Shown: in pieces, positions 1 through 56,424 of the stretch
Position numbering within the stretch: the first letter of the stretch is position 1
Layout of the letters: every line of letters starts with the position of its first letter
Source: Podarcis melisellensis
Taxonomy: Eukaryota
Length of the DNA stretch: 64,000 bases
Direction: 5' to 3' (one strand)
NCBI GenBank assembly: GCA_964234715.1
Contig: OZ174275.1
Position numbers and translations under genes: made by a program
The notes under the pieces: model-generated
The model's input: only the letters and a program-made list of their open reading frames with translations
Database searches by the model: none
What the model was told of the DNA's origin: nothing

Positions 1-601
1 TCATGCATTTGTTGGGGAAGAGTGAATTGGAATGTATCTCATTAAAATGCAAGCAAAATCAAATTTCTCTTCCATTCCTACAAGGAAGGCAGTGCTAGCG
101 GAACTCTTAAACGAAAGGAATAAGAATTCTTTACTGCACCATTAATTTTAAGGTTGGGACTGTCTGGCTTAATGCTGAGTTTCAGAGGATCTTCAAAGGA
201 ACATGATGTGAGAGTGTTTGAGGCAGTTCTGGTTATAGGATCATAAGCTGTGTCTTATCCTATATATCTTAATATTCCACCTCATTGCTTCATCTGGCTG
301 CACTCCCAGAGGAAAAATTTCACATAGCGCTATAACAATGAGAGAAGAATATAACAGGGGATGGCACCCTTCCCAGATCCTGCTAATCCCATAATTGGTC
401 CACTATAGTATAAAGAGCATTAACTATCCTGTTCCCCAGCCTGGAACAATACTGAAAAATCAGTATAGTTCAGAAGGGAGAGAGAATTTGATTTACTCTT
501 TAGAGGCCTAGGTTCCTCTTGTACTCCCTGAGTGGCCTCAGGCAAGTCCTCACAGTCTTAGCTGCCATCAAGAATTACACATGAATAATGCCTACGGGGA
601 T

Positions 602-1018
602 TATTCTGGCGAGTTGGACCATAAAGAAGGCTGATCACCGAAGAATTGATGCTTTTGAATTATGGTGCTGGAGGAGACTCTTGAGAGTCCCATGGACTGT
701 AAGAAGATCAAACCTATCCATTCTTAAGGAAATCAGCCCTGAGTGCTCACTGGAAGAGCAGATCGTGAAGCTGAGGCTACAATACATTGGCCACCTCATG
801 AGAAGAGAAGACTCCCTGGAAAAGACCCTGATGTTGGGAAAGATGGAGGGCAGAAGGAAAAGAGGGCGACAGAGGACGAGATGGCTGGATACTGTTCTCG
901 AACCTACCAGCATGAGTTTGACTAAACTGCGGGAGGCAGTGGAAGACAGGAGTGCCTGGCGTGCTCTGGTCCATGGGGTCACGAAGAGTCGGACATGACT
1001 AAACGACTAAACAACAAC
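602..1018 (+). mobile_element. 5'-truncated RTE/BovB LINE (3' end)
   Basis: Peptide IDAFELWCWRRLLRVPWT...LEKTLMLGKMEG...WRALVHGVTKSRT, (CAA)n tail, flanking duplication aatgcctac (587-595, 1019-1027). Confidence 0.92.
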
Positions 1019-20428: not shown

Positions 20429-25041
<4,613 letters not shown>

Positions 25042-34019: not shown

Positions 34020-34047
34020 ATGAGCTGGGGAGACATCTCTGCAGAGT
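34020..34047 (+). CDS. Probable first coding exon of the DHRS9-like paralog (MSWGDISAE)
   Basis: gcaATG AGC TGG GGA GAC ATC TCT GCA GAG T|GTAAGT; phase 1 joins acceptor ttgtttcAG|AT GGC GGA at 36333 to give [21 protein letters not shown]; TATAAA at 33789-33794. Confidence 0.6.
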
Positions 34048-35302
34048 GTAAGTACAAGTCATGGAACAAAACCAACGCCTTGGTAAAATGGTTCAGAAGA
34101 TATCGCAGTCAGTGTATTGACAAGTGGCTATCATATATAGGCTGAATAATCAAAAATAGGTCCCACTCTATGAGTATTGTATAGATGATGATCGTGATCT
34201 TAATTTTATTTAATTTATTGATGTTGTTGCTGCTGCTGTTACATTAATATCCAGTCTCTCTTCTACCATGGAACCCAAGGCAATGTAGATGTCTTTCCTA
34301 GATGGTCACCTCAGGAAAGTGGTGGCCTCAGATATCATCAGACCAGGCCCTGAGATTTGTTCATTGGTGATTCCTAAAGTAAGTGTATTTAGGCTCGGTG
34401 TCTTGCTCTTTCAAGGGAACAATCCTCAGTCCAGTGGGACCTACTCACAAGTAAGTGCACATAGGGCTGAAATCCTCACCAAAACAATTATGGATGTGCC
34501 TTAATGATTCTGCCTGAGCTCCCTCCCCCATCACTTAAAGCAGGTCTGCTCAGTTGATGACCCAGCAAGCTAATTCTACCAAGAGCTTGATAATGGGGAT
34601 CCTGCCTGGGGTGGCATAGACAGGTTGTCAAGGACCTGGTATACCACCGTCAACAGCTGCTGGGTGAGCTATGTCTGGCTCAGTGGGTCATGAAATGGGC
34701 CGTCCTGATTTAAATTCCCCTTTATCTTTGGCCTGCATTTCATGTGGCTGCTGTAATTGGTGCCCTCCTTGAGCCTGCTGGTTATAATTAGTTTTCTATC
34801 TGACAGAGATTTAAGAGATAAAAGGCTCATGGAGATAGATCCATAGGTACTCAATTGCAGTTTCTTACTAGTATCTTATGCTGATGACACCCCATGTGAA
34901 CATCAGCATAAGAATTTCCTGGTGAATTTCCTGGTGGGAGGATAAGTGGAGATACCTGTGGTCTTCCTTAAATAATTTATCAAGCATTTCTACCAAAGTA
35001 TCAATGTGGGTATCGGCTTTGAGGTAAAGCTTTTTTCTGGCCCCACTTATCACTAGCATGTGCCACTCAGAATGTGGCTTTACTCACTTCTGACATCAAG
35101 TGTTTAGGGAAGCACGGAAGGACCACATATTTCTGCCTCTTTCTTCTTGAGTTTTGTTCTGCTGATGGTTTGTGTGCTGTGTCTTTGTATTTTTTGAGGG
35201 TGAACGTTTGTGATTTACCGGCTCTTAATTTTTAATTTTTTTGTACTGTACTGTATTTTAATTGTATGACACCTTGGGAGGGTTTAAATAATTACTGTAA
35301 AT

Positions 35303-35429
35303 CAGGGCATTTTTTCAGCCGGAACTCAGTTCCGGCCCCTCTCAGGTAGGCGCCATTGCCATTATAAAAGAATAAGGGAGGCATTTATGGTGAGTTCCGG
35401 CACCAATTTTTTTTAGAGAAATAGCATTG
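35303..35429. mobile_element. Short hAT MITE
   Basis: CAGGGCATTTT / AAATAGCATTG ends, 8-bp TSD ctgtaaat (35295-35302, 35430-35437). Confidence 0.78.
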
Positions 35430-36332
35430 CTGTAAATGTTTCTGCCTATATTTGCTGACTTTATTGCTTACAACCTCCCTGTGTAACTCTAACAACATGC
35501 CAAGATATCATCATTACATCGCCTCACAATTAAGAGCATTCATTTGCCCAAGCAAACATGTGTTTTGCATGCTTCATATACAAAGATGTGCAGATAGAAA
35601 ACTTCCTTGGCATCACTTGCTGAATAAACACTGTGACACATTTTTGTTACAATGGTCAGGCTAATGAAAGGCCGTCAAGAAAGAAAGAGAAAGAGAGAAA
35701 GAAAGGCACTCTCACACCATGCTAAATCTAGTCTCTGATAGATCAGACTATAGATTGTCAGCACCAGTATCAGCATACAAAACACAAAGCAGAGGGGTCA
35801 TTATACTCACCAAAAAGAGCCCAAAGTTTGCGGTTTGCTCAGGGTTGCGATCTGTTTCCATTGCAGAATGGCATTGTGGGAAGTAACAGAAAGAACACAG
35901 TCCTCCACATCACTTGAGAGCCATCAAACTCCCCTCCCCTCTCCCTTCGCTATCCTGTGTTCATCATTGCCTTGAATACTAATGAATGTTCACCACAATG
36001 GGCACTGCCCCAACTGCTAACTGAGCTCCCTTTTTTCACGTTGAAGGGTTTTTCAGATGGGAGTTAGTGGCCAATATAGAGCAGATGCCATCTTGAAAGC
36101 AGCAGAGAACTATTGAGAAACTGCTGTGGAGGAATCTGCTCCTCCAAAGCATGTTACTCTTGGATACTATTCAGGTTGTGCCAGAAGTCTCTAGCTGCCA
36201 ACTTATACTGACGGGAAGATTCAACGAAACTGGAACGGGAAACAAAAGCCTCTGTGAAGTGCCCAAGTTGACAGAAATGGTGAGCACTTGTGGCAGATAG
36301 GTCCACACACGGCTGTCCTGATGTTGTTTCAG

Positions 36333-36650
36333 ATGGCGGACAGATAGGGATGGTGGCTGTCATCCTTTCCATCGCGGTTTGCTGGTTCATCAGAGACTGC
36401 CTAAAAGTGGAAGGCCTGAGGGGGAAGTATATTGTCATCACTGGATGCGACAGTGGCTTTGGCCATGCCCTGGCTAAGTACCTCGACCAGAAAGGATTCC
36501 GCATCATTGCTGCGTGTCTCTCAAAGGAAGGGAGCCAGGAGCTACTAGCCAACACTTCCTTGTCATTGCAAACTGTGGAGCTTGATCTAACGGACCCTGA
36601 CAGTATTGACAAGGCTGTGGAGTTTGTGCGGGCAGAAACTGAGGGTGTAG
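36333..36650 (+). CDS. DHRS9-like paralog exon (membrane anchor and Rossmann motif)
   Basis: Acceptor at 36331-32, donor GTA G|GTAAGC. Confidence 0.9.
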
Positions 36651-39600
36651 GTAAGCAGCCTATAGAACACAGCCTTGCTTTCAAAAGACAGGGGGCACCT
36701 CGAGGCAACCTGAATTGAGCATCCATTCGGAATGGTTTGCTCAAAACTTGTCCAGATGGTCTACAACGTCTGTGGGGTTTAAATGACATACGCTATTTCT
36801 CGAACATCAAGCCTGATTTGAGGCACCTGGGCTACAGAATTCCCTAGGTATATGCATTTTAGATTCATTTCAGTTTTTAAAACACAATTATACACAGTGC
36901 AAAATGTCAAGATAAAAGTATTGTTCATGTGATATCATTTACTTCTGCTAGTGTAAGAATACATAATGTAACAAATTACAGCCAGAAATTTTTCATAGAT
37001 ATATAGTGTAACAATCTGAGGTCAGGACAAGTCTCCAAACCCACATTACCAGTTCATTCTCTGATATCCTTTCCATGCTTCTTCACATTTTTTTTTTTAT
37101 TATTATTCCTAAAATACTCAAACAGGACTGTATGGCTTGGTAAATAACGCTGGGAGATCCATACCCATGGCCCCCACCGACTGGATGCAGCTGGATGATT
37201 TCTACAAAACCCTGGATGTCAATCTAATGGGGCTGATTGGGATTACCTTGAAGCTCCTCCCCCTCCTGAAAAAAAATAAAGGAAGGATTGTCAACGTGTC
37301 AAGTGTTCTGGGTCGCCTGGCATTTCTAGGGGGCGGCTATTGTGTGTCAAAATGGGGAGTGGAGGCATTCTCTGACACTTTGCGGTGAGTTGCCGTGGGC
37401 TTGTGGGTGACAGATGGTAGATTACTACTGTCTCTGTGATCATAGAGTTGTAGAAGGGACCCCAAGGATCATCGAGTTCAACCCCCTGAAATGCAGGCAT
37501 CTCAACTAAAGCACCCGGGACAGATGACCACCCAACCTCTGTTTAAAAACCTCCAATGGAAAGAGGGTTCACCAGCTCCTGAAGGAGTCTGTTCCACTGT
37601 CCAACAGTTCTTACTGTCAGAAAGTTCAATCACATCTGTGACTGCCTGCAACTCAGGCTGAACTGACTGAAAAGTATAATTGTGGGTTCACGTGGAAAAG
37701 AAGACAGGAAGGCAAAAACTCATTTGTCACAACAACTATTTATAATAGCCAGTTGTAGGATTACTGTGGAAGAGGATGCATCAGGGCTACAGCGTGGAAA
37801 AAGCTAAGTCAGGAGCATTTGCTTCCTATAAGGGTGGCACAATCTTGGATTTGCAGGAGGCAATATGCAGGCACAGATTCCACCTACAGGACCCCATTCT
37901 GGGTGAGAAGCCAACACGCCAGCACTGTCTGCTTGACATGCATAAGGTCCCATGTTCAATCCTCAACATCTCTGGCTAAGAGGATCTTGGGTAGCAGCAG
38001 GTGATCTTAATCTCTGCCTGGTATAGCTTGATCCCATTTATTCCAATGTGAAGGGAACCATAAGCAAACAAATGAGACTCACGTGGCCTAACTTTTACCA
38101 TTCTTTTATTAACATCCAGCAGGACATTGCATATGCCACGCGCATCCTCTTCAGTTTCACCTGCCCCACAGCCTTAAGATTGCACCATGAACTGGATTGG
38201 TAAAACCCACCACAAACTGATGAGTTTTTAAAATTTTTCTCTTAGGAGGGATATGCATCATTTCGGAGTAAAGGTGAGCATTATCGAGCCAGGATTCTTT
38301 AAGACAGGAGTAACTAATATAGGGGACATTGAGAGAGACCTACAAAGACTGTGGAACCAGCTGACTCCAGAGGCCAGAGACTCCTACGGGGATAAATACT
38401 TCCTTGATTGTAAGTGCAAATGTCCAGCACAAAAATTTGGGATGGCTTGAATGCCTGCATTTTATTCCAGTTATGTGATGATTTTTGCAAAGATTACTTG
38501 GCGTTATACCAAACTTAATGTTTTGAAAATGAATGATTTCCAGCTTCGAATCATTTTGTTGACTGTGATGGGAAAGAGCTTCGGTTTCGATAGGGAGGTA
38601 TGGGGTGGGGTGGGAGGGGGCCTGAACTGTTTCTCGAGTTGGAATGCCATTGATCAAATGCATTGGGAGATACATGCGTTTTCAAAAGATCACACTTCAT
38701 GAAGGCAGAGAAAAGTGACCATGGGGAATTATTATTTGGAGCACCAACTCATAGCTCAATGGTAGTGCATAGCTTTGCATACCAGAGGCCCTGGGTTTAA
38801 TCCTTGGCATCTCCAATTACAAGGACCAGGTAGCAGGCAGTAGGTAGGATCTCTTCCTGAGACCTTGGAGAGTCAATTAGATGATGCACAACTAGGTAGG
38901 CAAATAACTTCACCTGCCATAGCTTCACCTATGCTCTTCAACTTAGCTTTCACAGGATCTAGGGAGGTCTTATAGATCCTGTTATAGTCAAATATTACAG
39001 GTCGCATCCAAAATATCTTGCTATATGTATATGCCGTCTCTTAAACTGGATTGCATTGACAAGGGAAACGGAAGGGCACCTTCTGAGTGTAAAATAATCT
39101 TGGTGAATTGTGAGGCAGGCAAGATCTAGCAAACTGCTGAGCAGAGTCTTACTGAATCAGCATCTTCAGTGCTGAAAGTCCTCCCATCTTGTCCAAATTG
39201 TTAATGTGCTACTACAAACAGAAACTGGCAAAATGCAACTTCACAATGGTACCTCTAGGACAAGACTGGCACAGCAAGACACCCCATGGGACACATTTAG
39301 AAAAACAGGTGCACAGATGACTCAAGAAATTGTGTTAGCTGCATGTAATGGGGTTTCACGCTGTATTTTATGCAGACCTGACTGCTGTTGAATGAATTAG
39401 GAGTTGCTGAGTTTTATGCGCAGCATGACTAGTGCAGTAAAAAGTGTTTGCATCGCTGCTTTAGAACTACAGTTGTGTTTTGATCTCTGTTCCCTTAGCT
39501 TTAAAAATCTGGATTTTCACTTGATTTGATGGGGTCTTTTATCTTCCTAGCAGATTTAAGGCTGCAAAGGCTATCCATGAGAAGGCTGTGTGATCCTGAT

Positions 39601-39804
39601 GTTTCTAAGGTCACAAAGTGTATGGAGCACGCCTTGACCGCCAAGTACCCAAGGACGCGCTATGGAGTTGGATGGGATGCAAAGTTATTGTGGCTCCCGC
39701 TCTCCTATGCCCCCACGTTCCTCTCCGACGCAATGCTGAGAATGCTTTTTCCAGTTCCAGAGGGTGACAGTAATCCAGCAAAAAGATATCAAATAGATGT
39801 TTAA
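36350..39804 (+). CDS. Second SDR9C-family retinol/sterol dehydrogenase (DHRS9-like tandem paralog); exons 36350-36650 (acceptor at 36333), 37126-37384, 38246-38409, 39554-39804; 324 aa from ATG 36350, 339 aa with the upstream exon 34020-34047
   Basis: [50 protein letters not shown]; same 259/164-nt internal exons and phases as DHRS9; no stops or frameshifts. Confidence 0.93.
37126..37384 (+). CDS. DHRS9-like paralog exon (259 nt)
   Basis: aaacAG|GA CTG TAT GGC ... TTG CG|GTGAGT. Confidence 0.94.
38246..38409 (+). CDS. DHRS9-like paralog exon (164 nt)
   Basis: ctcttAG|G AGG GAT ATG ... GAT T|GTAAGT. Confidence 0.94.
39554..39804 (+). CDS. DHRS9-like paralog last coding exon
   Basis: Tandem acceptor TAG/CAG (exon start 39551 or 39554); ends RYQIDV TAA. 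Confidence 0.9.
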
Positions 39805-39958
39805 GGCAGGTGAATGTGCCAACATTTTGAAGCAAACTGTTGTCTCCACGGTGCTCTGATAGACTCTTCTATCTTGCCTGGTGAATATAACTTCTCTGAA
39901 ATTTCTAATCACAAAAATCATAGGATTGTAGAGCTGGAAGAGATACAAATCTAAATGA

Positions 39959-39964
39959 AATAAA
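39959..39964 (+). terminator. Candidate polyadenylation signal of the DHRS9-like paralog
   Basis: AATAAA about 155 nt after the stop codon. Confidence 0.55.
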
Positions 39965-50800: not shown

Positions 50801-53800
50801 AACTGCCTTCCACAAAACGAGCACCTTGTGGGCAGGCACAGGTGTATCCTCCAGGTCTCAGCAAGCAGAGGTGGCTGCAGACATCCTTGCATGGATTGGA
50901 CACTGTAATGATAAACAAAGACACACCTGAAGAGCTTTTAGGGGAGCTAATGGGATCCTTCCAACCAGACAAGAGAAATAGGCTGGGAATATGGAAGCTG
51001 TAGACTCAGTGGAGACACAGTGCTGTGCCATAGGCTTGCAAACTTGTCTCTCCCCCTCTCACGAAGACATTCTCCCTCCCTGTCGGTCATGTTATCTCTG
51101 CACTGGCGTTTCTGTCATTCGCAGTTAGCGCCAAGCCACAGTTTGCAGTCATGACCAGAAACAGATACTTCACTAACAGTGGTTAGCGAAAACACAGGCA
51201 GTCAAAATGCAAACCGTAGTTAAGTTACAAAGCTCATAGGAAGGGAAGGATTGCCGCATACGAGGGGAAGAGAAAGAAACTGGGAGCACCAGGCAAGCCT
51301 AATTTCCTAGAAGAATTAAGTTGGCACCAACCTCCTGGGACAGAAGCAGGCACTACAATATTAATGTGTCTGAAGAGCACCTTGAGTGTTTTGCCCCATT
51401 TCTATCCATGGCATACACCTCAGGTGGTGTCTTGCTGTTTTACCTACACTCCTAATACATGCTATTTCCTGTCCTCCCCTACAGAGCCCCAAATGGCAAG
51501 GGCAGCTACAAAATAGTCCATGCCTGAGATGGGCGATGCAGGCAGGCAGGTGAATTCATTACTGCCTCTGCCATGAGAGGATGTACAAATAATATATTGC
51601 AGTAATAAAATGGGAACAACATGCTTCCTCTCTGGCTCACAACCAGCTTTCTTGGAGGTTTTAAGAAATATGATGCCGTTATTTTCTTTCAGTTGTTGGT
51701 CTAATGATTGAGTCGCGAGAAGCTTTGTATGCAGAGCACCCTTCCAAAATGGTGCTGCACAAGGTGGGAAGCCTTTGTCCAACACATGCAGATGTGTGCT
51801 CAGTATTCAACCACGCCCATCATTCATTTTGTGGGCAGAGGCCAATTCCCAGCATGCCCTTTCTCCCCAGACAGGTGATCAGAAATTCTTAAAATGGACA
51901 GTGACAACTTTCTCTTTTGGGCATGTGGAATCTCTCTCATCTGAAGGGCCGCATTCCATCGTGGGCAGCTTTCCAGGGGCCACAGGAGAAACAGAAGTGC
52001 CTCACCCAGAGGAAATAGCCCCTCCTTTATTGAACTCCACCTCTCCTTCCTATTATCCGTTTGTGCCATGAAGAACCATAACAACACCATATCACAAAGG
52101 GGAGAAAATTGTGTACAGTGGAAACAGGAAAAGGAAGAAGCCATAATTCACAGTTCAACCAGAAAGGCTTATTCAACAGCTCACTCGATGAGGACTCTGG
52201 CTAGCACCAGTGCTATGCTTTCAGAAACACCAATATCATGCAACAGAGAGTTGTTGTAGGCTATTAACATTCACATAAGTACTAGGGCAATAAAACTATA
52301 CCAATGTATACAAGAATGTATGCATTTTTCTGCATATTTTCGCTTTTATATGTATCTTTGTTGTTTGCTCCTTCTCACTTTTCCTTCTTTTTTCTGTATC
52401 ACTTTATTTCTTTTAATTGAAATCACCTTAATAAAATATAAATATTTTAAAAAGCAAAGATTCATAGATGATGCACTATACAAGGCTGGCCATTACCTGA
52501 CTGATTGCATCTGTGCTGGTGATAGATACGGACTTGAGTAAGCCAAGGGTTTATAGTCAGCATTTTTACTTTCTCTCCTTTCCCAAATTTGTCTTCTTTC
52601 CAGACTTCTCCTCTTTCCTTAGATATCCAATATAGGTGACCCTCGAAGACATCAAGACTGTACGGGCTGCTAACTTCTCGGTGAAATAAAATAGCAGGTA
52701 AGTTAACATGCAAAAGGAGAGCAATGTTGTTGGTCTAACGAACATTCTTGAAACCAAAGTATACCTTCCTCCACATCATCTTATGGCCATTTTCTAAGCT
52801 TTCCTTCTAGTGGAGATTAATGTATGCTTTGGAAGCAAAATCACAGTGGCCTGTGGGAATTTCCCAAGTAAACCAGAAGTACTTTCAAAAAGACTTCAGG
52901 TTTTTCCTTCACAAATGAAAAGAGCACAGGAATCTGCACTACTTGCCAAATCTATACTGTTGCAGGGGTTCTCAGACTTTCTACTCTGAAAATTACCGAG
53001 GCAAACAAAATAGTGGCAAACAGAAGCAGAGCTTGGCATAATCTGCAGGCAATTACCGACACACTTTTCTACTGAATTCTAATCCATCTTTGAAAATTGC
53101 TGAATTATTTGTTGCAGCATTTTGCTTGCGGCAAGAGATTGCACAGCTTAACTTTCCTCAAGATAAATGCAGACATTTGCTCTGGAGGCATTGCTATATG
53201 CTCTGGGGGTGTTTTACCCATCTCCTGCCATTTCTTCTCATATTCTCCTTTCAGTGTTCAACTTGGACCTGTTCCCATACACTCACTGCAAACTGCATGT
53301 TTCATTCATCCCTCCTCCCTTGTTCCCTTCACATTCACTTCCTCCTTAATTTACACTGCTACTAATACCTCATTTTCTTCAACACCTCACCTCCTTTGGC
53401 AACTTTCCCTCAGTGAAGAGACCTTCCCCATCCCCCGAACTTCTCTGTTTCCTGGCCACACCTTTACAAGAAGTTATTGGTACCCGCATTGGTTGAACCC
53501 AAAGCACTAATGGTTAGGGAGTGGTGTTGTCAAGTGTGGTGGCACTGAGCTGGCTATGACACAGAAGGCCACTTGAAAGTGGCCCAAGGTCCCCAGTTTG
53601 AGGAACTGTAACCGTGCAAGTCCCTTTTCCCTCACTTCAATAACCACCCCGCCCCCAGCCATCCGCCACCACAGATAGTCTCCCAAGCATCTTGGGGAAC
53701 ACTGGGATTAAAATTGCCTCAGTCCATGTTCATATACATACGTCCATGCAGAACAGTCTTCCTGTCTGTTCCATCAAATCTCATTGATTCAATTAGGTTT

Positions 53801-56424
53801 TCCTTCATATCGCTCCAGTAGATTCTGTCATTGTTCAAATAATCAACTGAAAGACCAGTTGGCCAGCCAAGGTCTTCAAAGACTAATGTCTGCCTCTGTT
53901 GCCCATCCATCCAGGCGCTTTCGATTTTGGGTTGCCTTCCCCAGTCAGTCCAATACATTAGCCTGAGGAAAGGAGAATCTGTATTTTTAAATGGTTAGAT
54001 ACAACATAGCAAAGCACACAAACACTACGCAGAAAAAGAGAGAAATCTCCATGAAATGAGAATCAAGTTGGTAGGAACTTCATGGCTGACCACTTTTTCC
54101 CTCAGAGAAATATGCTCCAGAGTCCTTTTGTAGCTATCCAACTTTATTTTATATTATGTGCACACGGCTCTGTTTATCTGTTCTTGCTGCATTTCATTTT
54201 ATTGATTATTTCTACAGTATTGCTTTGTCTCTTTTGTCCTTTCTGCAGCCTTGTAAGTAAGATTGAGAAATTACAATGTACCTAAAATCAAGACAATGGT
54301 TTTCACAGCAAAATATCCAAACTATTGCCTCTCTGCTGTGTCATGAAATCATTTTTTGTTTCTAAGAACCATTCTCTTTTTTCTCTCTTTTGTGTTTTCC
54401 ACCAATAATTCCCCGCTAAACTATTTCTTTACAATGCGCTATTTCATGTTACATTGATAAATATTCCCTTTAAAATGATAAGTGACTCCCATCAGAGGAG
54501 ATTGGCGCCAATAACTCAGACAGACACTAATTATGCTTGCTGTTTCTAAGCTTTGTGGACTTTGCCAAGGCACAGACAGTGGAGCCCAATACCTAGGCAA
54601 AGTAAAAAGCTACTAATGCACATCAATATGAGGATGATTTGCTTTTGAAACTTTCCCACAATGTAAGGGTTCATTGTGGCCTATTTTGTTTGTTTGTTTG
54701 CATGCTGCTTGCTTTTTATGCCCATTTTTATGACCATCTGCTGATGAGAAAGCTATCAGCTGCGCTAAAACAATTATCGTGCAACACAGTTAACCCCGAA
54801 CTGATGTACTGCTTGTTATATGTAATTGGAGTGTAACTGGTGACTTTAGTTATTTATCAGTTCAGTCGTAAAGAGAAAACAGCAGAATTCAGCACAAGGG
54901 TCCCAACAAGAGAGGGGAGGAAAACCATCTGCTCCACTTTACTGAGGTCTGTCTCTGCTTCCAGTCGTGACTTAACGATAACCACAAGAAGTCTTGTGAC
55001 ATTTGCACATCGCAACCTCTGTTAGTTATTCAAAGTATTTCAGGTAACATATAGAATATAGATATTAATGTGCATTAGATATTTCCTATTCATTAGATAT
55101 TTTAGACAGTTCATGCAGCATCTCCTTTCGTTTATATTCATGCTTTAAGCTGCCAAAATGCTTACCCAAGTTTGGGGTTGACAGCAATAGCTGCTGGTTG
55201 GTCCAGCGAAGAGTAGACGAGCCACTTTCGGTATCTCCCGTCAAGCTTTGCCACCTCTATTCGATTTGTCCCAGAATCAGTCCAGTAAAGGTGCCTAGTT
55301 GAGATCCAATCATTTTTTTTAAAATAAAAAATGAACTGTGTATTTTGTCAACATCAACTACAGTGTATGGGAAAGGCCTTTAAAAAATATTCAGTAGTAA
55401 AATGCCAAAAATTCAGAGACAATGCCAAATAAATGTGATACAATGCACATGAGTTTATGGTTGCTGTGTGAGAGGTGTAAATCCCCTTGTTCTAATTCCC
55501 CTATTTGCTCCGGGTTTCCCTCTCAGTCCCCTGGAACAAATTTGGGTAGGCAGGGAGAAGTCCCACTTCATGAACCAAAATTGTTTCACTCATTAAATTA
55601 CATTGTTGGGATTCAAAACCTGGTGTTTGGAGCTCACAAAAGAACTGATATTAGATCTGGAAGAGATATCAGATCTAATGCAGATGTGGGAAATAGGATC
55701 TGATTGATGGGATTCTCCTCCCTGCAGACCACTTGTGGGTACAGACTGGTTCATCTGTCAATCATCTGATGTCACAATGGCCCAATTTCAAAGGAAAGAA
55801 CTCAGGAGTGCTAATTCAGGAGTGCTGCGTTTGATTTTAAGCTGAAGCTGTGCTCCTTTTCATCAAAAAGTCACTGCTTTTTTAATGTGGCACCTTTCTC
55901 TGTGAATTTGGCATAGTAGGGGGTTAAAGAAAAAAGATGGCAAATTCCAAATGTGCTGCCATTTAGATGCATGGGAGGGGGGTGGGGTTGTGCTCCTGAC
56001 TCTTCCTTTTGGCCATGGCTTCAAGTTTCTCATGCTTGATGCTGTACACCTGGTAAAGTGCACATGGGTTGCCCAACGCGGCAACCTCTGAGGTCTGGGA
56101 AATGTTTAATTAGTGGTTCCCTAGCACTGAACAAAAGGGCATTAAAAGAAATAATTAAAAGAAGCTAAAGGTCAGAAATCAATCCTTCATTGTTTCAAAA
56201 CAGGTAGAGTACCCTAGATGAGCACCTGCACTGATGGTTGGGACATATATGTTTTGAATGAATCCAAGACTTTTAACCAAAAAGGTTACTCTATTATCAA
56301 GCTCTTCCAGCCTGGCCTTTGACTCCAACTCCCATCATCCCCAAGCTGCATTGCTAAAGCTCAAGGATGATGGGTATTGTAGTCCCAACATCTGGTGGTT
56401 ACCAGACTGGGGGAAAACATTCAT

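Follow-up and report, generated by a model that had tools for sequence, protein, structure and literature searches.

An intact, transcribed rdh1 ortholog beside LRP2 in a lacertid lizard represents an ancient SDR9C lineage apparently lost in mammals

The name rdh1 reportedly comes from zebrafish studies (Nadauld 2004/2005) on retinoic-acid-dependent gut development. In tilapia the liver is the main site of rdh1 expression (PMC8073704), and the relatives DHRS9, RDH16 and RDH7 are oxidising enzymes with retinoids, steroids and oxylipins as substrates (PMC8761697). Research on retinoid and steroid metabolism is mammal-based, and it is in mammals that rdh1 seems to be missing. Here, a gene of the SDR9C type, intact and made up of five coding exons, is described on the + strand of a 64,000-nt window of Podarcis melisellensis DNA, the window being the whole stretch that was analysed (Table 1). 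The product is 339/340 amino acids long, or 324/325 when counted from an internal Met at 36350 in exon 2, which is the start of the 325-residue NCBI-type isoform. The gene is very probably the lacertid rdh1 ortholog, i.e. a member of an ancient and separate SDR9C lineage that has adjoined LRP2 since before the shark/bony vertebrate split, and an intact, transcribed, putative lipid-hydroxyl dehydrogenase that was apparently lost in mammals. It is already annotated in databases and is a real but mostly ordinary gene; its structure, splicing, orthology, synteny and motif integrity are shown here, whereas cofactor, substrates and subcellular location are predictions.

Table 1. Coordinates of the lizard rdh1 gene and its neighbours in the window
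Feature	Position	Strand	Details
DHRS9	20474-25041	+	coding exons 20474/20429-20774, 22879-23137, 23909-24072, 24815-25041
rdh1 coding exon 1	34020-34047	+	28 nt; ATG 34020; peptide MSWGDISAE; phase 1 donor GT at 34048
rdh1 coding exon 2	36333-36650	+	membrane anchor (CWFIRD), TGCDSGFG cofactor motif, a further string of 13 protein letters (not shown)
rdh1 coding exon 3	37126-37384	+	259 nt; NNAGRSIP, VNL (catalytic Asn), NVSSV (catalytic Ser), YCVSK
rdh1 coding exon 4	38246-38409	+	164 nt; IIEPGFFKT (PG motif)
rdh1 coding exon 5	39554/39551-39804	+	stop TAA 39802-39804; C-terminus RYQIDV
rdh1 3' UTR	39805-39964	+	AATAAA 39959-39964; contig coverage to its end at 39964
LRP2 (megalin), 3' part	43348-64000	-	ORFs with FENPIY, YWTD repeats; N run ~43.77-43.93 kb

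The initial annotation described a complete gene with the exon sizes and phases of DHRS9, and this holds, as the 259-nt and 164-nt exons recur in both genes and each is bordered by AG/GT in the lizard gene. The limits first drawn run from the ATG of the mini-exon to the last base of the AATAAA signal, and the quoted residue strings (27 protein letters, not shown) are present along with the SDR motifs, the reading frame ending in RYQIDV and a stop. An extra short 5' coding exon is a feature of the rdh1 orthogroup and is present in the window gene, where its peptide matches Anolis MSWSDTCLK (P0288/P0292); the genes called in fugu, shark, frog and emu begin 0.7-2.6 kb before their first large exon. 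Pieces of exon 2 and exon 3 match the Pfam family adh_short (E=3.8e-11 and E=1e-16, respectively), and the best solved-structure match of exon 3 is DHRS9 (9b2f, E=5.8e-28).

Transcripts of the gene, on which the first reading depended, were found as spliced contigs in four public runs from three studies of related lizards, the runs being taken as RNA because their contigs are intron-less. Together, the four runs join every exon of the lizard gene. The 34047|36333 joint is covered by a spliced contig of run X5, with GT..AG ends and in frame with the main ORF, the 36650|37126 and 37384|38246 joints both occur in contigs of all four runs, and the 38409|39554 joint (GT..AG) is covered by a 1056-nt contig of run X6 reaching across coding exons 2 to 5. 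Some contigs are unspliced upstream of exon 2 from ~35932, which fits either an alternative first exon or pre-mRNA. The exon 5 acceptor is a NAGNAG site (tagCAG|a), and a placement at 39551, with which the P. muralis model X1 of NCBI agrees, has to be corrected; the RNA-derived contigs splice to 39554, giving a turtle-like ...FLD-Y-LRL..., whereas 39551 would give ...FLD-SD-LRL....

The lizard protein contains both the Rossmann-fold cofactor motif TGxxxGxG (as TGCDSGFG) and NNAG, and its catalytic tetrad Asn-Ser-Tyr-Lys and PG motif (VNL, NVSSV, YCVSK, EPG) match their counterparts in an alignment with DHRS9 and RDH16-like proteins. All of the cofactor and catalytic motifs are kept in the aligned non-avian members of its clade, and the rdh1 signatures NNAGR and W-x-IRD are also carried. 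The protein would be a microsomal enzyme with an N-terminal membrane anchor, probably binding NAD(H) through TGxxxGxG/NNAG and using the tetrad to oxidise lipids at a secondary or allylic hydroxyl. The substrates predicted as most likely are all-trans/cis retinol and/or 3-alpha-hydroxysteroids or oxylipins, as for the relatives DHRS9 and RDH16; both substrate and cofactor are putative assignments made purely by homology. There is a considerable, though not the larger, chance that the main job of this real gene is instead the oxidation of 3-alpha-hydroxysteroids or hydroxylated fatty acids (oxylipins), or a reductase activity, rather than retinol oxidation. Such a role would suit the promiscuity of DHRS9, RDH16 and RDH7 towards retinoids, steroids and oxylipins cited above, and the present analysis holds no counter-evidence, the origin of the name in zebrafish retinoic-acid work being what points towards retinol.

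The identity of the gene was established with a joined protein model in BLAST, MAFFT and trees, while database searches were run with single exon pieces or stored proteins; a search of 50%-identity representatives with the exon-2 piece gave mostly fragments and odd isoforms and was the source of P0009, P0002 and some outgroup and paralog rows. Maximum-likelihood trees were built under LG+G4 (careful) and C20-PMSF (quick), with support given as UFBoot / SH-aLRT, and included 32 rows in the rdh1 clade and 7 invertebrate rows. Zebrafish sequences were left out, and the link to zebrafish rdh1 runs through the NCBI/Ensembl names of other teleost, turtle and tuatara proteins together with synteny. 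The rdh1 clade, including the lizard protein, has support of 99/95 (LG+G4) and 97 (C20-PMSF), its branching follows the species tree, and its members are shark, teleost rdh1, coelacanth, amphibian, turtle, crocodilian, tuatara, lizard and bird proteins, with no mammal. The vertebrate RDH5/RDH16/HSD17B6/SDR9C7/DHRS9 proteins and the lizard protein form a clade of 99/98 against the seven invertebrate rows, and the DHRS9 clade (100/100) holds the upstream gene of the window and leaves the lizard SDR9C-type protein outside. In both trees the deep branching order among the rdh1, DHRS9 and RDH16/RDH5 groups is not fixed. The lizard protein is 60-81% identical to orthologs from shark to lizard, compared with 48.6% for DHRS9 beside it and 44.6% for a Pogona RDH7-like protein; sharks are among its best 120 relatives at 57-58%. 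Orthology to teleost rdh1, proposed at the outset, is borne out by this clade and by fugu gene order. The proposal of an ancient tandem paralog stands as regards its age, as the clade extends from shark to birds, and a sister relationship to DHRS9 is a candidate reading; retention in reptiles proved true but too narrow, the gene being kept in every non-mammalian jawed-vertebrate group sampled.

Across species, NCBI labels rdh1 orthologs RDH5-like, RDH7-like, RDH16-like or DHRS9, and 'RDH5-like' is misleading because RDH5 belongs to a different clade. If the automatic names 'RDH5-like' and 'RDH7-like' were taken at face value, and given the loose deep clade order, the gene could be a one-to-one ortholog of a moved mammalian gene of the chromosome-12 type (RDH16/RDH7/RDH5/HSD17B6/SDR9C7), and there would then be no mammalian loss. 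This is very improbable, since RDH16/HSD17B6-type proteins exist separately in lizard (Pogona P0086), bird (Cygnus P0373) and frogs and cluster with their mammalian counterparts, not in the rdh1 clade, and since that clade likewise excludes the RDH16-like, RDH5 and SDR9C7 rows of mammals. Meanwhile, no mammalian ortholog is present among the best 120 relatives of the lizard protein and the 10 kb that follow DHRS9 in echidna and in vole contain no rdh1 remnant, in agreement with the absence from mammals first suggested. Judging from these sequence comparisons, mammals apparently lost the rdh1 lineage on their stem. A literature search for rdh1 loss in mammals or for the reptile gene found nothing relevant.

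In every bird ortholog sampled, the catalytic Asn, the catalytic Ser and NNAG are lost and the reading frame is kept. That the lizard copy might likewise be a functionless relic, transcribed as an expressed pseudogene or pseudoenzyme in the way that bird copies may be, is highly improbable; it keeps every motif, its open frame is conserved at full length with P. muralis, and 23 of the 30 coding differences listed are synonymous and 7 non-synonymous. Purifying selection acts on the lizard gene, which is intact, spliced and transcribed. As a tentative and rather doubtful extension, rdh1 could constitute a fourth ancient retinoid/steroid SDR9C lineage with three fates, i.e. deleted on the mammalian stem, turned in all birds into a conserved, catalytically dead pseudoenzyme (Asn, Ser, NNAG and PG motifs lost, Tyr/Lys and the reading frame kept), and still enzymatically active in lizards, turtles, crocodilians, amphibians and fishes. 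Under that reading, shared regulation in absorptive epithelia might lie behind the adjacency to megalin, unbroken for >400 million years.

The upstream neighbour, which has 99% identity to Podarcis raffonei DHRS9 (P0430), lies 11-16 kb away on the same strand, while the downstream neighbour is marked as LRP2 by a piece at 53719-53958 (-) matching Ldl_recept_b (E=1.2e-19). LRP2 exons are on the - strand downstream of a + strand SDR gene and the two therefore form a tail-to-tail pair, as the initial annotation had it. The same arrangement is found in zebra shark, fugu, Xenopus and emu; the order in fugu is ABCB11-like / SDR / rdh1 / LRP2-like, and in turtle and quail the adjacency of the rdh1 ortholog to DHRS9 is evident from fusion gene models. 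That the gene arose within squamates or sauropsids by tandem duplication of DHRS9, as the shared strand, 259/164-nt exons and phases might imply, can be dismissed as having a negligible chance, given closer identity to fish, shark and amphibian proteins (60-67%) than to the neighbour, placement in separate clades and the same gene adjoining LRP2 in shark and fugu, and a recent copy, already doubted at first sight from its divergence, is ruled out by identity, tree and synteny. The pairing of retinol uptake by megalin with oxidation by the rdh1 ortholog, suggested at the outset, would be a putative role, with the conserved adjacency as its one line of support.

The physiology of reptiles, amphibians, fishes and perhaps birds thus includes an SDR9C enzyme apparently without a mammalian counterpart. 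Automatic names (RDH5-like, RDH7-like, DHRS9) invite wrong transfer of function, and consistent use of rdh1 would tidy annotation. Furthermore, the apparent mammalian loss and the decay of bird motifs are modest but clean cases of lineage-specific remodelling of the retinol-oxidation toolkit.

Among known proteins, the closest is Podarcis muralis P0284 ("retinol dehydrogenase 5-like isoform X1"), which has 98.8% identity over all 325 residues and represents this gene in a sister species, although the window transcripts support use of the distal NAGNAG acceptor and an N-terminus extended by 14 residues through exon 34020-34047. The Ensembl/UniProt "Retinol dehydrogenase 1" proteins of turtles and tuatara (P0271, P0272, P0276) are 69-74% identical to the lizard protein. 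Teleost rdh1 (Takifugu P0217, Gadus P0009, Oreochromis P0183) falls in the same 99/95 clade at 60-63% identity and has in common with the lizard gene NNAGR, W-x-IRD, the 5' coding mini-exon and the place between an upstream SDR and LRP2, but differs by ~40% sequence divergence and in that functional data, on gut and eye development and on liver expression, come from fish only. DHRS9 (SDR9C4; structures 9b2f/9b2g) resembles the lizard gene in fold, motifs, 259/164-nt exons and phases, but forms a separate clade, is found in mammals and does not have the NNAGR and WxIRD signatures. Mammalian RDH16 and rodent Rdh1/Rdh7 (SDR9C8 group) belong to the same SDR9C 'Rdh cluster' and act in microsomes as NAD+-dependent retinol/3-alpha-hydroxysteroid dehydrogenases; the mammalian RDH16 group resembles the lizard protein in the ACL(T/S)xxG stretch after beta-2, but belongs to another clade and another locus (the chromosome-12-type cluster), and mouse 'Rdh1' has the name alone in common with fish and reptile rdh1.

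The SDR9C-type gene between DHRS9 and LRP2 (megalin) belongs to the rdh1 lineage, which is ancient in that its origin predates the split between cartilaginous and bony vertebrates. Its placement comes from a maximum-likelihood tree of 73 proteins over 346 columns, comprising 32 rdh1-type proteins, 19 DHRS9, two teleost upstream genes, 13 chromosome-12-type proteins (RDH16, RDH5, HSD17B6, SDR9C7-like) and seven invertebrate outgroups. The window gene is nested in an rdh1 clade that mirrors the species tree and spans chimaera, shark, ray, sturgeon, gar, bowfin, teleosts, coelacanth, amphibians and sauropsids, with support of 99/95 in a careful search (UFBoot/SH-aLRT, LG+G4) and 97 in a quick C20-PMSF tree. 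DHRS9 forms a separate clade (100/100) that includes the upstream gene of the window. The initial annotation was right to propose an ancient paralog, albeit with no sister relation to DHRS9 implied, as the tree supports no single order for the rdh1, DHRS9 and chromosome-12-type lineages. A 319-residue skate protein (P0335, Leucoraja, named RDH5) carries the NNAGR and WLIRD signatures without the N-terminal extension; its position is basal to the entire rdh1 clade, away from the other cartilaginous fishes, and it may therefore be an extra paralog in skates.

Gene order points the same way. Fugu has ABCB11-like (-), a 337-residue SDR (+), rdh1 (+) and a 4660-residue LRP2-like gene (-), zebra shark has rdh1 (+) and LRP2-like (-), Xenopus tropicalis has ABCB11-like (-), the rdh1 ortholog XB5957220 (+) and LRP2-like (-) with DHRS9 elsewhere, and emu has DHRS9 (+), rdh1 (+) and LRP2 (-), demonstrating that the tail-to-tail pairing of rdh1 and megalin has been kept throughout the jawed vertebrates. 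This synteny and the tree jointly establish the orthology with teleost rdh1 that had been suggested for the lizard gene. Furthermore, loggerhead turtle and quail have fusion gene models in which rdh1 is directly downstream of DHRS9. In X. tropicalis the ortholog lies directly between ABCB11-like and LRP2, with no intervening DHRS9; a published table also lists XB5957220 next to lrp2, and the published X. laevis table has dhrs9 several genes away with nostrin in between. The frog order indicates that DHRS9-rdh1 adjacency has been broken in frogs and that rdh1-LRP2 adjacency is intact.

Databases were queried with single exon pieces or stored proteins; use of the joined model was confined to local BLAST, alignment and trees. 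Exon pieces match Pfam adh_short, the closest solved structure to the exon-3 piece is DHRS9 (9b2f), and the exon-2 piece led to full-length representatives; word searches were seeded with cod rdh1 (P0009), a crocodile protein (P0002) and P0232:1-318, the stretch of a turtle model that corresponds to DHRS9. Across its full 325 residues the window protein shows 98.8% identity to the Podarcis muralis entry 'retinol dehydrogenase 5-like isoform X1' at NCBI, and the gene is an ordinary one that is already annotated under misleading names. Turtle and tuatara orthologs are called 'Retinol dehydrogenase 1' in Ensembl/UniProt, NCBI names across the orthogroup include RDH5-like, RDH7-like, RDH16-like, RDH3-like and even DHRS9, and Xenopus XB5957220 has no proper name yet. 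Identity to the window protein declines smoothly with phylogenetic distance, from 75-81% in other lizards through 73.5% in tuatara, 69-73% in turtles and 61-68% in amphibians and coelacanth to about 60-63% in ray-finned fishes ('retinol dehydrogenase 1') and 60% in zebra shark. It is lower to the neighbouring DHRS9 (48.6%) and to a Pogona RDH7-like protein (44.6%).

The window contains three genes in the order first described, and its DHRS9 is 99% identical to that of Podarcis raffonei. The protein strings quoted in the initial annotation (27 residues and the C-terminal RYQIDV) are all present, and both the 259-nt and the 164-nt exon are bounded by canonical AG/GT sites and match DHRS9 in phase.

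Features of the Podarcis melisellensis window
Feature	Position	Strand	Remarks
Open reading frame	588-998		MPTGIILASWTIKKADHRRIDAFELWCWRRLLRVPW...
DHRS9 coding exons	20474/20429-20774, 22879-23137, 23909-24072, 24815-25041	+	
rdh1 gene	34.0-40.0 kb (34020-39964)	+	last base of AATAAA signal at 39964
rdh1 first coding exon	34020-34047	+	28 nt
rdh1 intronic segments	35214-35412, 37403-37800		
rdh1 last-exon acceptor	39549-39554	+	NAGNAG tandem site (tagCAG|a)
LRP2 (megalin), 3' part	~43.3 kb onward	-	YWTD repeats (Ldl_recept_b E=1.2e-19), FENPIY tail motif
N run	~43.8 kb		157 long, kept unaltered

Contigs of four public runs (three studies) from related lizards, a few percent divergent from the window, were aligned to the rdh1 gene; the runs are guessed to be RNA, as their contigs lack introns. 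The joints 36650|37126 and 37384|38246 occur in all four runs, and one 1056-nt contig that includes the joint from 38409 to 39554 covers the last four coding exons. A joint from 34047 to 36333 with GT..AG ends, seen in one run, defines the mini-exon that begins the coding sequence, and its ATG is exactly the start assigned initially. This exon shares the frame of the main ORF, and the peptide that it encodes, MSWGDISAE, matches Anolis MSWSDTCLK. Spliced contigs use acceptor 39554, giving a turtle-like Tyr (FLD-Y-LRL), and the P. muralis X1 model corresponds to acceptor 39551, giving Ser-Asp, so that the full protein has 339 or 340 residues. A 324/325-residue form starting at Met 36350 is also plausible, since some contigs continue without splicing into the sequence upstream of 36333 and an isoform of this kind is among the NCBI predictions. 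When the window is compared with these related lizards, the 30 best-supported coding differences comprise 23 synonymous and 7 non-synonymous ones, the pattern of a constrained gene.

One low-depth contig in a single run (X5) joins 34047 straight to the 259-nt exon at 37126, an in-frame skip that omits the exon with the TGxxxGxG motif; such an isoform is probably minor or without function. The two intronic segments have contig depths of hundreds to thousands and many loose ends in every run; they behave as dispersed repeats, probably SINE or other transposon copies, and do not belong to the gene. The open reading frame near the window start may be a piece of the reverse-transcriptase/endonuclease tail of a retrotransposon, of a type frequent in squamate genomes.

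The gene appears to be missing from mammals. When relatives of the crocodile protein are ranked, the top 120 extend down to sharks at 57-58% identity and include a single mammalian entry, a bat SDR9C7 fusion model (50%). All mammalian rows of the tree fall outside the rdh1 clade, and in echidna and one vole no rdh1-like remnant was detected within 10 kb past the DHRS9 3' end (E>0.3). The proposed loss in mammals is well supported, although it is apparent rather than proven; a literature search found no publication describing it.

Birds have kept the gene in altered form. A full-length frame is present in 12 of 12 sampled orthologs from emu (L006:10001-16772) to passerines (P0320, P0313, P0322, P0351, P0346, P0334, P0318, P0331, P0319, P0310, P0332, P0029), and Tyr-x3-Lys is retained except in a tit (Cyanistes), which has Arg for Lys. 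Meanwhile, VNL has changed to VSL (to VGL in pigeon) with loss of the catalytic Asn, NV[A/S]SV has changed to NLINA-type variants with loss of the catalytic Ser, NNAG has become (S/N)NAEG-type variants, EPG has become EHG and, in most birds, GFG has become GLG. In the tree, a long stem leads to the birds, among which branches are short. These substitutions suggest a conserved pseudoenzyme, or a changed or new function, in Aves.

The lizard protein itself has all defining SDR elements intact, with dinucleotide motifs TGCDSGFG and NNAG, a complete catalytic tetrad (Asn, Ser, Tyr, Lys), the PG motif and an N-terminal hydrophobic anchor with the clade-specific W-x-IRD. The suggestion that rdh1 and megalin may form a functional pair has their adjacency as its basis; the genes are convergent, with no promoter common to both, and mammals retain DHRS9 beside LRP2, apparently without rdh1. 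Work in zebrafish reportedly links rdh1 to retinoic-acid-dependent gut development. Tilapia rdh1 is expressed mainly in liver (PMC8073704). The relatives DHRS9, RDH16 and RDH7 are NAD+-dependent enzymes of microsomes that oxidise retinol, 3-alpha-hydroxysteroids and oxylipins (PMC8761697). By homology, lizard rdh1 would most likely act at the ER membrane, where it would oxidise a lipid hydroxyl with NAD+, its cofactor, substrate and topology being predictions.
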